64,000 nt of DNA from Macrostomum lignano (lineage: Eukaryota). The translations under genes and the position numbers were made by a program. A model generated the notes under the pieces. That model was not told where the DNA came from. It saw only the letters and a program-made list of their open reading frames with translations, and made no database searches. Within the stretch, counting starts at the first letter, position 1, and every line of letters begins with the position of its first letter. Of this stretch, positions 17,401-23,400 are shown piece by piece. The DNA lies in NCBI GenBank assembly GCA_002269645.1, contig NIVC01002927.1:8662-72661 (forward strand). Direction: 5' to 3'.

Positions 17401-20400
17401 CAAATCTAATTGAAATTATTTCAGCTCCAAGTGCAACTTACAGTTCTACAATTTCCTAGAAGCCCTGTGGGAACACGTTAGCGCTTTGGCCGACTTTTTA
17501 GCGAAGATTTACAGCAGTCGGTTGGATCAAAAATACCTGCTGAGTAGTGGTGCAGCTGCTCATCCGTTCGACATTCTGGCTGAGTCGCCTTCATCCGCGC
17601 TAGGAAAGTTGATCTTTGAGCTTCACGTGTCGCCCACCAAGTTAGTAGCGAAAAATTATTGAAGAATTGCTTTTTTCTTACAGTTTTATAAAGAACACAA
17701 TGTCCTGAGTTTACTTTTTTAGACTGGAAGATCTAGCCGCTAGATTGGGACTCAACCTGTCACACATTATCATCAAGAACTCTATGCCTAAGATCAGCAT
17801 CGAACCGAGGGCCAGGCCGGAGCCTGATTCTACACTTTTTAGTCTGACAGGTAAGTGCTGCGCTAGATGGCGGGTTCCGATTAGAAATTTAGATCTGAGA
17901 TTAGAAATGGTAGATCTGTGATTGGAAATGGTAGATCTGTGATTAGATATGGTAGATATGAGATAAGATATGGTAGATCTGTGATTAGAAATGGTAGATA
18001 TGAGATTAGAAATGGTAGATCTGTGATTAGAAGTGGTAGATCTATGATTAGATATGGTAGATATGAGATTAGATATGGTAGATCTGGGATTAGAGGTGGT
18101 AGATCTGTGATTAAAAATGGTAGATATGAGATTAGAAATGGTAGATCTGGGATTAGAAATGGTAGGTATGAGATTAGAAATGGTAGATCTGTGATTAGAA
18201 GTGGTAGATCTGTGATTAGATATGGTAGATATGAGATTAGATATGGTAGATCTGGGATTAGAAGTGGTAGATCTGTGATTATATATGGTAGATCTGTGAT
18301 TAGATATGGTAGATCTGAGATTAGATATGGTAGATCTGAAATAAAAAGTGGTAGATCTGTCATTAGAAATGGTAGTTCTGAGATTAGATATGGTAGATCT
18401 GTGATTAGAAATGGTAGATCTGGAATTAGAAATGTAGATATGAGATTAGAAATGGTAGATCTGAGATTCGATATGGTAGATCTGGATTAGAAGCGTGTAA
18501 ACTTGGATCACGAACAGGAAGACTATTCGACGTGAAAGATTAACTTAGTAAATTCTTGAGTTAAAAAATTTAAACCATGGATCATCTCTATTCAGCCGTT
18601 AACACCTCAATCCATCAGAACAAAAGGCCACTGAGATTCTTTGCCGCGTTGTCAACGACTGCGAGAGCTGGACTGGGCAGCCCCGAGACCCACACCAAGC
18701 TGTTGTGAGCCTGGCTAAAGAACTGAACCGCTTGTTCAAGTGTGAGTATCGATTCAATTTCTGCTTTTAATTCGCTGCTATTATGTACTTTTAGTTTAAT
18801 TTTTACTTTTTTTTAATTTTTTTTTAATTTTTAATTTTTACTTTTAAACTGTCAAATTAAAAAGATTTGGCTCGTAATTTTTTTAGTTGTATTATCTGCT
18901 TTTTTCTCCTGCCTGTCTGTCTGTCTGTCTGGTTTGTCTGTCTGGTTTGTCTGTCTGTCTGTCTGTCTGTGTGTCTGTCTGTCTATCTGTCTGTCTGTCT
19001 GTCTGTCTGTCTGTCTGTCTGTCTATCTGTTATCTGTCTGTTTGTCTGTCTGGTTTGTCTGTCTGGTTTGTCTGTCTGTCTGTCTGTCTGTGTGTCTGTC
19101 TGTCTATCTGTCTGTCTGTCTGTCTGTCTGTCTATCTGTTATCTGTCTGTTTCTCTGTCTGGTTTGTCTGTCTGGTTTGTCTGTCTGTCTGTCTGTCTGT
19201 CTGTCTGTCTGTCTGTCTGTCTGTCTGTCTGTCTGTCTGTCTGTCTGTCTGTCTGCAGGGCCAAGAGCCTCCCTGCACATATCCTCTTCACCTATCTATC
19301 TAAAAATCGCGCCCGCAGTGCTCGCCAGCTCCGGCGGCAGCGCGAGCTCCAAGCCGCACTGGTTGAACCGGCACCAACTTGCCGAGGTGGCCGCCTCCAA
19401 AGCTTTCCTAGAATGGCGATCATCCCTGGGCGAGCTGAAATTTGTTGATTTGACATTTCTAAAATCTGCCAACGATAAATTTGCATTCTTTCTCAATCTG
19501 AGAAACCTCATCGCAGTGCATTTTGCCGTCGAGATTAGTCACGTGAGAATCTCGAAAAAGTAGTCTTTGAGCACTGGTATGAAATCCTGTTTAATCTGTC
19601 TCTTTAATACCTGTCTCTCCCGCAGTTGTGGACAGACCCTGTGCTGGCTGCCTGTCCTCTGCTAGCCTGCAAGTCTCATTCCCGTGAATTCACGTACTGG
19701 ATTGGCAGTATTGGGCCAATAAGCCTGACCGATATTGACGATTTTGTGCTGGGCATTGGCAAAACTAGGCACACTGATTTGAGTAAGCATTGTTAGTGCT
19801 CTGCTTTCGACTCTTTTTTCAAATAACTTTCAAATAAAGTTTCGATTTTTACTTAGCATTTTAAACTCTAATATACACTCAAAATAAGCCTATACTCCCC
19901 ACAGTGTACACACGCTTCTGGGCAAGCCTCTAATAACCCGCCACCCCACAATGTGCACACGCTTCTGGGCAAGCCTCTAATAACCCGCCATCCCACAATG
20001 TGCACACGCTTCTGCGCAAGCCTCTAATAACCCGCCACCCCACAATGTGCACACGCTTCTGCGCAAGCCTCTAATAACCCGCCACCCCACAGTGTACACA
20101 CGCTTCTGGGCAAGCCTCTAATAACCCGCCACCCCACAATGTGCACACGCTTCTGGGCAAGCCTCTAATAACCAGCCACCCCACAATGTGCACACGCTTC
20201 TGCGCAAGCCTCTAATAACCCGCCACCCCACAATGTGCACACGCTTCTGCGCAAGCCTCTAATAACCCGCCACCCCACAGTGTACACACGCTTCTGGGCA
20301 AGCCTCTAATAACCCGCCACCCCACAATGTGCACACGCTTCTGGGCAAGCCTCTAATAACCAGCCACCCCACAGTGTACACACGCTTCAGACAGGCCTCT

Positions 20401-23400
20401 AATAACCCGCCACCCCACAGTGTACACACGCTTCAGACAGGCCTCTAATAACCCGCCACCCCACAATGTACTCACGCTCTCATGGAGCAGCGTTTAGAGA
20501 CCAAACAATGTTTTAATTAATGAAGCGTACCGGTATTTATTTATTCTGGTCTGTTTAATTAGACACTCCACATTGGTAAACATTTACGCTAGCAGATTTG
20601 TTGGCCCAGAATTAATCCGATACTGAATTCCTTTCCAATTCTCCTGAGTCTGATTAGCAGCATAATAGAATCCCATGCACTGGATGCCGTCCGCCCCCAT
20701 TCAATTGCCATATGTGCCCCCCCACCTCACGGTAAATCCCTTCTAGAATTTCTCAGCGGATTTCACCCAGAATTGTGCGAGTTCGTACTGGCCGAGCAGC
20801 CCGACCCGCTCACTGTATTCGGTCTGGTTCAGTTCCAGCGAGTGTCACCTCCGTTCAAGGTGAGAAAGATTAAAGAATGCGATCGTTTTAAAACAACAGC
20901 GCTCCCCTTTAATCGCTATTGCAAGGTAATATAAGAATCTCTTTTCTTTATTTCTTTGATAAAATCTGAGAAATCTGAGAAGGCTTCAGCATTGCCTAAA
21001 AATATTTTTTTAACATCCGTGCAAACAGATCTTCAGAAGCAACATAAAAATAGCCTTGAGAATCTCCCTTTAATGCTCTCCAGAATCACTAAATGGCCTT
21101 GGGAATCTTCCTTTAATGCTCTCCAGAATCGCTAAATAGCCTTGAGAATCTCCCTTTAATGCTCTCCAGAATCACTAAATGGCCTTGGGAATCTTCCTTT
21201 AATGCTCTCCAGAATCACTAAATGGCCTTGAGAATCTCCCATAAATGGTCTTGAGGGTCTACTTTGAATGTCCATGAGAACCATCTATAAAATGGCCTTG
21301 GTATCTCCTTTAAATGGCCTTGACTCCATTTAATGGCTTGAGAATCTCCTTTAATAGCTTTGAGAATTATCGTTAAATGGCCTTGTGAATCTTCGTTAAC
21401 TGGCTTTGAGAATTATCGTTAAATGGCCTTGTGAATCTAAGTTAAATGACCTTGGTATATCCCTTAAATAACTCTGAGAATCTCCTTGAACTGGCCTTGA
21501 GAATGTCCTTTAAATGGCCTTGTGAATCCCTGAAATGACCTTGAAAATCTCCCTCAATTGGCCTTGGCATCTCCTTTGAATGGCCTTGAAAATCTTCATT
21601 AAATGGCCTTGAGAATCTCCATTAAATAGCCTTGAGAATCACCATTAAATAGCCTTGAGAATCACCATTAAATAGCCTTGAGAATCACCATTAAATAGCC
21701 TTGAGAATCACCATTAAATTGCTTTGAAAATCACCATTAAATTGCCTTGAAAATCACCATTAAATAGCCTTGAGAATCTCCATTAAATAGCCTTGAGAAT
21801 CACCATTAAATAGCCTTGAGAATCACCATTAAATAGCCTTGAGAATCACCATTAAATAGCCTTGAGAATCACCATTAAATAGCCTTGAGAATCTCCATAA
21901 ATGGCCTTGAGAATCACCATTAAATGACCTTGAGAATCTCCATTAAATTGCCTTGAAAATCACCATTAAATTGCCTTGAAAATCACCATTAAATTGCCTT
22001 GAAAATCACCATTAAATGGCCTTGAGAATCTCCATTAGATGACCTTGAGAATCACCATTAAATTGCCTTGAAAATCACCATTAAATTGCCTTGAAAATCA
22101 CCATTAAATTGCCTTGAAAATCACCATTAAATGGCCTTGAGAAACTCTCAGATAAGCTTGAAAAGTTTCAAAAATGACCTAGACAACCTTCATAAAACAG
22201 CTTTGAAAATCTACCATCAACTAAAAAGCCACCTTTTCTACAACACTCCAGACCTACTCGGCTCATTCAATCAAAGAGGATCTGAGCAAATCCTGTCATC
22301 AATTTGTCACCGCTTTTGTCTCGTCAAGCTCCGAAGCTGTTTCTGCTGCATTCAACGACAGCGGCACTTCAGTGGTTCTGCCTCACTGGCTGGCCTACTA
22401 TGCCCCGATGCTGCAGCAGCAGAGAAGCGCAGCGGCAGGAGGAGTCAACGACGGCAACAGTGCCAATGCAGATAATCGGCTATGGGACCCAGCTAGTGTC
22501 CTGGCTTCGTTAAAACGCCTGTGCTCGGGCCCGCAGCTTGCTCAGACTTGGGCGCATCTGGGCGGCAGTTCAGACAGTTCGATTTCTTCTTCTGCCGGCC
22601 AGCAGCAGCAGATTCGGTGCCGGCTGGCTGAGCCGGAGACAAGCGAGTTTGGAGTCTGTATTGATTATCCAAGCGCTAATGCTGTGGGCAAACTGGTCAC
22701 GCCTGCGGATTCCGGATCTACCGTTGATGGTATTGGTGCTGCTATATGTGTCCCCGTGTGGAATTCCATTGAATACATTGAAGTCTTCTTTATAATCTTA
22801 ATATTTTAGCCTCATCCACTGCGTCACGATTCCCGATTCCTTGATCCTTGACTCTTCAGACATACTCCGTCATCTCAGTCCCAAAATCCCATTCCGTTCT
22901 ATCATCTCAGTCCCAGAATCCCATTCCGTCATCTCAGTCCCAGAAACCCATTCCGTCATCTCAGTCCCAGAATCCCATTCCGTCATCTCAGTCCTAGAAT
23001 CCCATTCCGTCATCTCAGTCCCAGAAACCCATTCCGTCATCTCAGTCCCAGAATCCCATTCCGTCATCTCAGTCCCAGAATCCCATTCCGTCATCTCAGT
23101 CCCAGAATCCCATTCCGTCATCTCAGTCCCAAAATCCCATTCCGTCATCTCAGTCCCAAAATCCCATTCCGTCATCTCAGTCCCAAAATCCATTCCGTCA
23201 TCTCAGTCCCAAAATCCCATTCCGTCATCCCAGTTTCCAGAATCCCATTCCATTCCTTCATCCCAGTTTCCAGAATCCCATTCCGTCATCTCAGTTCCAG
23301 AATCCAATTCCGTCATCTCAGTCCCAAAATCCCATTCCAATCTATGATCTCAGTCCAAGAATCCCATTTCGTCATCTCAGTCTCAAAATCCCATTCCGAT

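Follow-up and report, generated by a model that had tools for sequence, protein, structure and literature searches.

We analysed a window of 64,000 nucleotides from Macrostomum lignano (record NIVC01002927.1, assembly GCA_002269645.1), which is the locus of the gene BOX15_Mlig014784g2. An exact spliced mapping places 23 GT-AG exons at 8482-51269 on the plus strand, and together they yield the deposited protein (P0002) at 2958 of 2958 residues. Judged by its domains and alignments, this gene is a spastizin (ZFYVE26/SPG15) orthologue with an internal DUF547 domain (PF04784). Such a fusion had been claimed from the DNA letters alone, in what we call the sequence-only reading, and it is borne out by the matches described below. 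The features are as follows, in window coordinates.

8482..51272, plus strand: ZFYVE26/spastizin orthologue BOX15_Mlig014784g2, 23 coding exons, ATG at 8482, stop codon TGA at 51270-51272
17723..17850, plus strand: exon 8, upstream spastizin anchor (block of 22 residues), aa 1209-1252
18619..18741, plus strand: exon 9, helix ahead of the Pfam-defined domain and part of the structural module, aa 1252-1293
19319..19542, plus strand: exon 10, start of DUF547 with the F..N..N....H helix (block of 14 residues), aa 1293-1367
19468..22308, plus strand: genomic span of the Pfam DUF547 match, aa 1343-1476, with three introns inside
19626..19782, plus strand: exon 11, Y..G..G hairpin block (17 residues), aa 1368-1420
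20747..20859, plus strand: exon 12, block of 19 residues with F1444 and P1454, aa 1420-1457
22252..22729, plus strand: exon 13, C-terminal part of DUF547 (block of 20 residues), then a low-complexity linker, aa 1458-1617
23551..24110, plus strand: exon 14, downstream spastizin anchor (block of 25 residues)
28566..28733, plus strand: FYVE zinc finger (PF01363), exon 17, aa 2219-2274
49683..51251, plus strand: TPR_ZFYVE26 region (PF25569), exons 22-23, aa 2825-2952

Gene model and domain match

The M. lignano protein matches human ZFYVE26 (PDB 8yad_C) with E=5.3e-85 in a phmmer search of the PDB, in five stretches whose order is kept. Pfam detects the FYVE finger with 49.4 bits (cut-off 27.8) and the C-terminal TPR_ZFYVE26 with 82.6 bits (cut-off 27); the finger carries the R(R/K)HHCRxCG motif and also matches FYVE domains in the PDB. 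Human ZFYVE26, an alpha-solenoid-FYVE-alpha-solenoid protein that partners SPG11 and AP-5, is collinear with the M. lignano protein over its full length. The FYVE finger, the TPR_ZFYVE26 region and both anchors around the insertion site are common to the two. Within its long introns the M. lignano gene houses a minus-strand GPCR gene, and the three introns inside the DUF547 span are full of minisatellites.

The match to DUF547 on the deposited model reaches 38.2 bits (E=1.7e-9) against a gathering score of 27 and covers positions 6-125 of the 125-position profile. By this measure exons 10-13 encode a complete DUF547 domain, with a score well beyond chance. Exon 9 fits exons 8 and 10 in phase, and in the alignment the orthologues show 'RHPxxVVxxLLxxL' at this point. 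The exon 8 anchor is the best-conserved flank (mean pairwise identity 0.31). When amphioxus ZFYVE26 is compared with 8yad_C, two significant stretches flank the insertion site: the counterpart of the exon 8 anchor aligns to human residues 1150-1247 and that of exon 14 to 1293-1509. As these alignments place it, the domain interrupts the central alpha-solenoid, with the segments collinear with human ~1150-1247 and ~1293-1509 on either side. We treat the locus as a single gene because the deposited protein is recovered exactly from the 23 GT-AG exons and the DUF547 exons have exons homologous to spastizin before and after them.

The sequence contains every peptide block quoted in the sequence-only reading, correctly ordered and phase-consistent, and that reading's exons 8 (17723-17850) and 14 (23551-24110) are those of the deposited model. 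The reading differed at the acceptors of exons 10 and 12, where it chose 19259 and 20669; the deposited model uses the alternative in-frame acceptors 19319 and 20747, which remove 20 and 26 aa. The 20747 acceptor has a better pyrimidine tract than 20669 and gives a higher Pfam score, 38.2 vs 36.6 bits (E=5e-9 on the earlier splices), both above the cut-off. Between the anchors about 430 aa had been estimated; the earlier splices give 443 aa there and the deposited model 397 aa.

Distribution in animals and vertebrate loss

Our taxonomic survey is based on an exhaustive HMMER (phmmer) search. It returned 48 matches, about 25 of them FYVE proteins 1,560-3,210 aa long, most of which are matched from the first anchor into the DUF547 region. 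Proteins named ZFYVE26 or Sptz by their source came from Argopecten, Haliotis, Bulinus, Potamilus, Physella, Argonauta, Owenia, Bacillus, Anabrus and Prorops, and also from Hetaerina, Frankliniella, Oratosquilla, Centruroides, Priapulus, Antedon, Glandiceps, Saccoglossus and Branchiostoma. In Platyhelminthes, Mollusca, Annelida, Arthropoda, Priapulida, Echinodermata, Hemichordata and Cephalochordata, ZFYVE26 has the insertion at an identical position, and annotations for about 20 species show the order anchor-DUF547-anchor-FYVE. All ten internal regions that were cropped pass the Pfam DUF547 threshold (27.4-63.8 bits). The core is retained in 16/16 annotated variants and close relatives sharing a 90% cluster with ZFYVE26 orthologues. 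Three full-length ZFYVE26 products (2750-2887 aa) come from Logan contigs no longer than 9-11 kb, a size that suggests spliced transcripts. Word-index homologue searches were of no use for this survey: besides Macrostomum copies they found just one orthologue, from cod, and an unrelated Chromera velia protein (P0070); the last, their only distant match, has neither a DUF547-like region nor a Pfam domain and was rejected.

The invertebrate ZFYVE26/Sptz models of Branchiostoma (XP_019625924.1), Haliotis (XP_046355808.2) and Bacillus rossius (XP_063235572.1) have the same architecture and insertion point as M. lignano. The M. lignano domain differs in scoring 38 bits against up to 64 for its invertebrate counterparts, in lacking the C-terminal 'WY..DF' and in having a longer low-complexity linker.

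Where invertebrate orthologues have a module of ~300-350 aa with DUF547, human ZFYVE26 has only ~45 unaligned residues (1248-1292), which stand opposite ~345 residues of amphioxus; the figure of about 65 aa given in the sequence-only reading was about right. Cod ZFYVE26 has a low-complexity linker at the insertion site, and no DUF547 was detected there by Pfam at E<=10 or by hhalign of the domain profile. Given these blank searches and a human gap of 45 residues, we rejected the idea that vertebrate ZFYVE26 keeps DUF547 in cryptic or degenerate form. Lost by vertebrates, the domain has there given way to a short or low-complexity linker.

Since the same insertion occurs at the same place in all these invertebrate groups and is absent from human and cod, we regard it as ancestral to bilaterian spastizin. 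The comparison supports an origin at least as early as the bilaterian ancestor and a loss on the vertebrate line, with both dates bounded by the taxa found, which are the bilaterian groups listed above together with human and cod. Of the two histories that had been offered for the fusion, the ancestral one with vertebrate loss is favoured by the presence of the module at one position in protostomes and deuterostomes. The lineage-specific one is contradicted by ZFYVE26 of molluscs, an annelid, arthropods, a priapulid, a crinoid, hemichordates and amphioxus.

To our knowledge, mechanistic work on SPG11-SPG15 has been done nearly all on vertebrate proteins, and published domain maps contain only solenoid-FYVE-solenoid. 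Our results show that the ancestral bilaterian spastizin had an additional globular domain under purifying selection, which changes the picture of the original role of the SPG11-SPG15 scaffold and raises the question of what stood in for DUF547 in vertebrates. Published descriptions of SPG15 make no mention of such a domain (10.1101/2024.06.14.598999; PMC3744948), and the literature searched nowhere mentions DUF547 together with ZFYVE26, spastizin or SPG15. In the databases, however, the deposited M. lignano protein already carries precomputed Pfam matches to PF25569, PF01363 and PF04784, and UniProt holds fragments named 'DUF547 domain-containing protein'. The novelty left undecided by the sequence-only reading is therefore relative to the literature only, the DUF547 plus FYVE architecture having been annotated automatically.

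Conservation, signature and fold

Mean pairwise identity is 0.29 for the DUF547 domain and 0.27 for the whole protein; on these values conservation of the spastizin DUF547 matches that of the remaining scaffold. L1340, F1349, N1352, H1360 and Y1391 (M. lignano numbering) are invariant in 16 orthologues, and N1355 is nearly invariant.

We aligned 21 eukaryotic DUF547 domains, 12 from ZFYVE26 and 9 from 7 other proteins. The signature F..N..N....H / Y..G / F / S-P / L is present in M. lignano, in the 11 other ZFYVE26 domains and in the 9 domains from elsewhere. Plant MIP1/UCHIGAWA, class IV GRX-DEP-DUF547, Entamoeba PTEN-DUF547, DENN-DUF547 and RasGAP-DUF547 proteins share this signature and a comparable domain length with ZFYVE26, and differ from it in their partner domains. 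In the ZFYVE26 copies the stretch from the His helix to the Y..G hairpin is longer by 10-40 aa, and the domain lies inside a solenoid of 3000 aa, not at a terminus.

The cysteine of the 'C..CPP' motif named in the sequence-only reading is indeed missing in M. lignano, which has QFQRVSPP, and this had been taken as a sign of a non-catalytic role. Across the 21 eukaryotic domains, however, Ser stands before the conserved Pro in nearly every case and the upstream Cys varies, so these cysteines do not define the family in this sample. Spastizin thus does not stand out by the substitution, which as a mark of a non-catalytic variant is uninformative.

The amphioxus domain is predicted to form one compact, mostly helical globular domain (pLDDT 85, pTM 0.87). 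The M. lignano domain is the most divergent, with 21-25% identity to its orthologues, and its model reaches only a mediocre pLDDT of 63. Searching the PDB by sequence with the DUF547 region gave no match even at E<=10, and Foldseek searches of the PDB with both models gave no significant match (best E=0.43 for M. lignano and E=2.7 for amphioxus, TM <= 0.23). The structural comparison suggested in the sequence-only reading thus brought no relative, and function cannot be inferred from the fold.

Possible functions of the domain

We know of no function or solved structure for DUF547, large as the family is, and no function has been experimentally demonstrated for any DUF547 protein in the literature searched. 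Its constant presence in a well-studied lysosome-reformation machine gives the domain a concrete cellular context. Taken as a whole, an ancestral bilaterian DUF547 in spastizin, lost in vertebrates and with a proposed accessory role, is in our judgement quite probably the best explanation of the findings.

The accessory role itself is proposed more tentatively, and we think it somewhat less likely than not. DUF547 may stand out from the SPG11-SPG15 scaffold and serve as an accessory module that binds a membrane lipid or a small-GTPase-type partner. It would then give spastizin an input for recruitment or regulation besides PI3P binding by FYVE on late endosomes and lysosomes, an input with which vertebrates might have dispensed or for which they might have substituted another. 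As the domain has no sequence or structural relative in the PDB, binding is argued only from the context of domain fusions. Fusions of DUF547 to DENN and RasGAP occur in other eukaryotes; Entamoeba joins it to PTEN (10.1101/2021.11.29.470399), and plants join it to GRX and DEP (PMC13621322). One plant DUF547 protein without an obvious transmembrane domain is found at a polar plasma-membrane domain (10.64898/2026.08.17.745151), and recruitment of human AP-5/SPG11/SPG15 involves coincidence detection of PI3P and Rag GTPases (PMC7814351). A bolder version, which we consider speculative and rather unlikely, is that DUF547 is an ancient membrane- or GTPase-sensing module, a second recruitment determinant of the SPG11-SPG15 (AP-5) coat working together with FYVE, and that vertebrates lost it once recruitment used other inputs such as Rag GTPases. 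If true, invertebrate spastizin would provide the first functional assignment for a family found in bacteria, plants and protists. Knock-down or genetic manipulation should be feasible in M. lignano, insects and amphioxus, which carry the spastizin DUF547.

The spastizin DUF547 could instead be an enzyme with an Asn/Asn/His/Tyr active site, acting at the lysosomal membrane on, for example, a lipid or a thiol/redox substrate. Free-standing DUF547 domains share its strictly conserved polar residues N1352, H1360 and Y1391, as well as the nearly invariant N1355, and the fusions to glutaredoxin in plants (PMC13621322) and to the lipid phosphatase PTEN in Entamoeba (10.1101/2021.11.29.470399) agree with such an activity. 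Against this, the literature searched reports no catalytic activity for any DUF547 protein, Foldseek matched no enzyme fold in the PDB, and the cysteines that the sequence-only reading took as conserved are not so in the eukaryotic sample. We consider an enzyme improbable.

A lower probability still is given to the view that DUF547 is a tolerated insertion that helps the solenoid fold or keeps its spacing, binds no ligand itself and was therefore easily lost in vertebrates. Vertebrate spastizin does function without it, and the conservation of the domain, at 0.29, is no higher than the scaffold average. However, the insertion has been held at one position across protostomes and deuterostomes, and unrelated DUF547 proteins show the same invariant polar residues, a family-wide signature that a spacer would not retain.

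An erroneous merger of spastizin with a separate gene nested in its intron, a thought encouraged by the minus-strand GPCR that the long introns already house, has next to no chance of being correct and was set aside: the DUF547 exons share the strand of the spastizin exons on both sides and are in phase with them, no sampled isoform omits the core, the multi-species architecture noted above recurs in about 20 species, and contigs of intron-free size encode whole proteins with DUF547.

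Identification of a DUF547 domain in Macrostomum lignano spastizin

The region 18400-23700 is eukaryotic DNA in which short coding blocks are separated by minisatellite-filled introns. Three-frame translation recovered all of the peptide blocks quoted in the sequence-only reading, and every GT-AG junction in exons 7-14 is phase-consistent, giving a single stop-free open frame. A homology search pointed to Macrostomum lignano and to its deposited protein P0002 (BOX15_Mlig014784g2, 2958 aa). An exact spliced mapping reproduces P0002 residue for residue from 23 GT-AG exons at 8482-51269 on the plus strand, followed by TGA; the ZFYVE26 locus record is NIVC01002927.1 of assembly GCA_002269645.1. 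Pfam scores are 49.4 bits for a FYVE finger and 82.6 bits for the C-terminal TPR region specific to ZFYVE26, and the protein matches human ZFYVE26 (PDB 8yad chain C) in five collinear stretches (E=5.3e-85). Because of these matches, BOX15_Mlig014784g2 is the spastizin orthologue of the flatworm. The conserved anchors flanking the insertion had been assigned to exons 8 and 14, and these numbers are the same in the deposited model.

The Pfam DUF547 profile (PF04784, gathering score 27) matches residues 1343-1476 of the deposited model with 38.2 bits (E=1.7e-9, profile positions 6-125 of 125), and scores 36.6 bits on the splice choice of the sequence-only reading.

19468-22308, plus strand: DUF547 match, exons 10-13, genomic span of residues 1343-1476

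The exon model first proposed therefore stands as regards the domain, with small boundary corrections: the acceptors lie at 19319 rather than 19259 and at 20747 rather than 20669. Both deposited acceptors are in frame with the alternatives, and the inter-anchor length is 397 aa in the deposited model versus 443 aa with the earlier acceptors. The paired sites are 60 nt apart at exon 10 and 78 nt apart at exon 12, and the deposited model takes the downstream one in both cases. Alternative splicing to the upstream acceptors would lengthen the protein by 20 aa ahead of the DUF547 module (exon 10) or by 26 aa within it (exon 12).

In the literature searched, no paper was found that mentions both DUF547 and ZFYVE26, but the databases already have the architecture. 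The precomputed Pfam architecture of P0002 is PF25569+PF01363+PF04784, so the combination is already automatically attached, and M. lignano fragments in UniProt are named 'DUF547 domain-containing protein'. Among the matches listed, the DUF547 literature consists almost entirely of plant expression studies, with none on spastizin, and DUF547 is absent from the top spastizin/SPG15 papers. The DUF547-bearing ZFYVE26 is real, well supported and widely distributed in evolution, a new and unremarked form of a known protein.

Distribution and ancestry

An exhaustive phmmer search with P0002 residues 1138-1650 against 1.84 billion representative proteins gave 48 matches at E<=1e-3; FYVE proteins of 1,560-3,210 aa, named ZFYVE26 or Sptz by their sources, make up about 25 of them. 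In most of these FYVE proteins, one unbroken match starts at the first anchor and reaches the DUF547 region. All 10 cropped internal regions tested exceeded the Pfam threshold (27.4-63.8 bits), and the core motif is kept in 16 of 16 annotated variants or close relatives sharing 90% clusters with eight orthologues.

Source taxa of the ZFYVE26/Sptz matches
Molluscs: Argopecten, Haliotis, Bulinus, Potamilus, Physella, Argonauta
Annelid: Owenia
Insects: Bacillus, Anabrus, Prorops, Hetaerina, Frankliniella
Other arthropods: Oratosquilla (crustacean), Centruroides (scorpion)
Priapulid: Priapulus
Crinoid: Antedon
Hemichordates: Glandiceps, Saccoglossus
Cephalochordate: Branchiostoma

Nine very Asn-rich, AT-biased ZFYVE26-like metagenome proteins among the phmmer matches (P0023, P0028, P0030, P0032, P0037, P0042, P0043, P0045 and P0047) have the same anchor-DUF547 order with long low-complexity insertions; P0047 is Pfam-confirmed.

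Two stretches of human ZFYVE26, residues 1150-1247 and 1293-1509, align significantly with the amphioxus segment, and at the insertion site 45 human residues stand opposite 345 amphioxus residues. In cod ZFYVE26 the DUF547 position is occupied by a low-complexity linker, in which neither Pfam, even with the cut-off relaxed to E<=10, nor profile-profile comparison picks up the domain. The domain thus occupies one homologous position in protostomes and deuterostomes, including a chordate, which argues against a lineage-specific fusion and favors the alternative of an ancestral one lost in vertebrates. The simplest account, for a sample of protostomes, a crinoid, hemichordates, amphioxus, human and cod, is one gain that predates the bilaterian ancestor, followed by loss in the lineage leading to vertebrates.

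Conservation, structure and possible role

In an alignment of 16 orthologues, L1340, F1349, N1352, H1360 and Y1391 (P0002 numbering) are invariant, and N1355, G1397, F1444 and P1454 are nearly so. When ZFYVE26 domains were aligned with DUF547 domains from Ginkgo, Mantamonas, a DENN-domain protein and others, a signature of F..N..N....H, Y..G, F, S-P and L was common to both groups. Mean pairwise identity is 0.29 in DUF547, 0.27 over the whole protein, 0.22-0.23 in the N-terminal solenoid and 0.59 in FYVE.

The M. lignano module was modeled with only moderate quality (mean pLDDT 63, pTM 0.60); the amphioxus model (pLDDT 85, pTM 0.87) is a single compact domain made mainly of helices, plus two small hairpins. 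Foldseek found no significant PDB match for either (best E=0.43 and 2.7, respectively), nor did the sequence of the region find a relative there, so the fold is without a solved representative and structure gives no function.

Human SPG15 is an alpha-solenoid-FYVE-alpha-solenoid protein that coils around SPG11 (10.1101/2024.06.14.598999; PMC3744948), and coincidence detection of Rag GTPases and, via FYVE, of PI3P brings the complex to late endosomes/lysosomes (PMC7814351). These papers make no mention of DUF547. In other proteins, DUF547 is found with modules of membrane and small-GTPase signaling. Entamoeba combines it with PTEN (10.1101/2021.11.29.470399) and plants with glutaredoxin and DEP (PMC13621322), and a plant DUF547 protein without an obvious transmembrane domain localizes to a polar plasma-membrane domain (10.64898/2026.08.17.745151). 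Among the phmmer matches, the eukaryotic metagenome protein P0048 combines DUF547 with DENN (Rab-GEF type), and Mantamonas plastica P0015 has two tandem copies following RasGAP; these combinations point to small-GTPase/membrane contexts.

From this context, the reading we tentatively favor is that spastizin DUF547 may bind a ligand or a partner. Such a module would stand out from the central solenoid on a surface loop and would give the SPG11-SPG15 scaffold a further input to its regulation or its recruitment to membranes. An enzymatic role is unlikely. A replaced Cys had been read as suggesting a non-catalytic or binding role, but almost all aligned eukaryotic members have Ser before the conserved Pro and a variable upstream Cys, so this residue is uninformative on spastizin specifically. 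A merely tolerated insertion seems more doubtful still. A gene-model artefact is highly improbable; three full-length ZFYVE26 products lie on Logan contigs of just 9-11 kb, short enough to suggest spliced transcripts.

Neighboring features and copies

Eight of the ten introns between exons 5 and 16 are largely minisatellite, each different, with periods of 4, 21, 23, 27, 35, 47 and 59 bp.

Minisatellite arrays, 15138-25523
15138-16058
17015-17381
17879-18492
18909-19255
19897-20478
21048-22147
22866-23503
24163-24622
25179-25523

The 59-bp and 47-bp units, in separate introns, have a common CCACCCCACAAyGTrCA core, and exons 10 and 15 are flanked by (CTGT)n and (TGTC)n arrays.

About 40467-45272, minus strand (L001 32986-37791): annotated 381-aa rhodopsin-type GPCR gene (Pfam 7tm_1), in the long-intron region of ZFYVE26
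3579-3995, plus strand: ORF with a WW domain (PF00397, 46.8 bits), upstream of ZFYVE26

The GPCR gene is interleaved with ZFYVE26, since its span contains exons 19 (42934-43038) and 20 (43634-43693). The WW-domain ORF is presumably an exon of a neighboring gene; Pfam finds nothing in a further ORF at 5400-5657. Five other M. lignano UniProt models (P0001, P0003, P0004, P0005 and P0007) are 86-98% identical to this gene, and many of them have apparent frameshifts, which fits duplicated or polyploid copies together with an older, error-prone assembly. The DUF547 region is present in P0001, P0003 and P0004, the last two with precomputed Pfam DUF547 matches.
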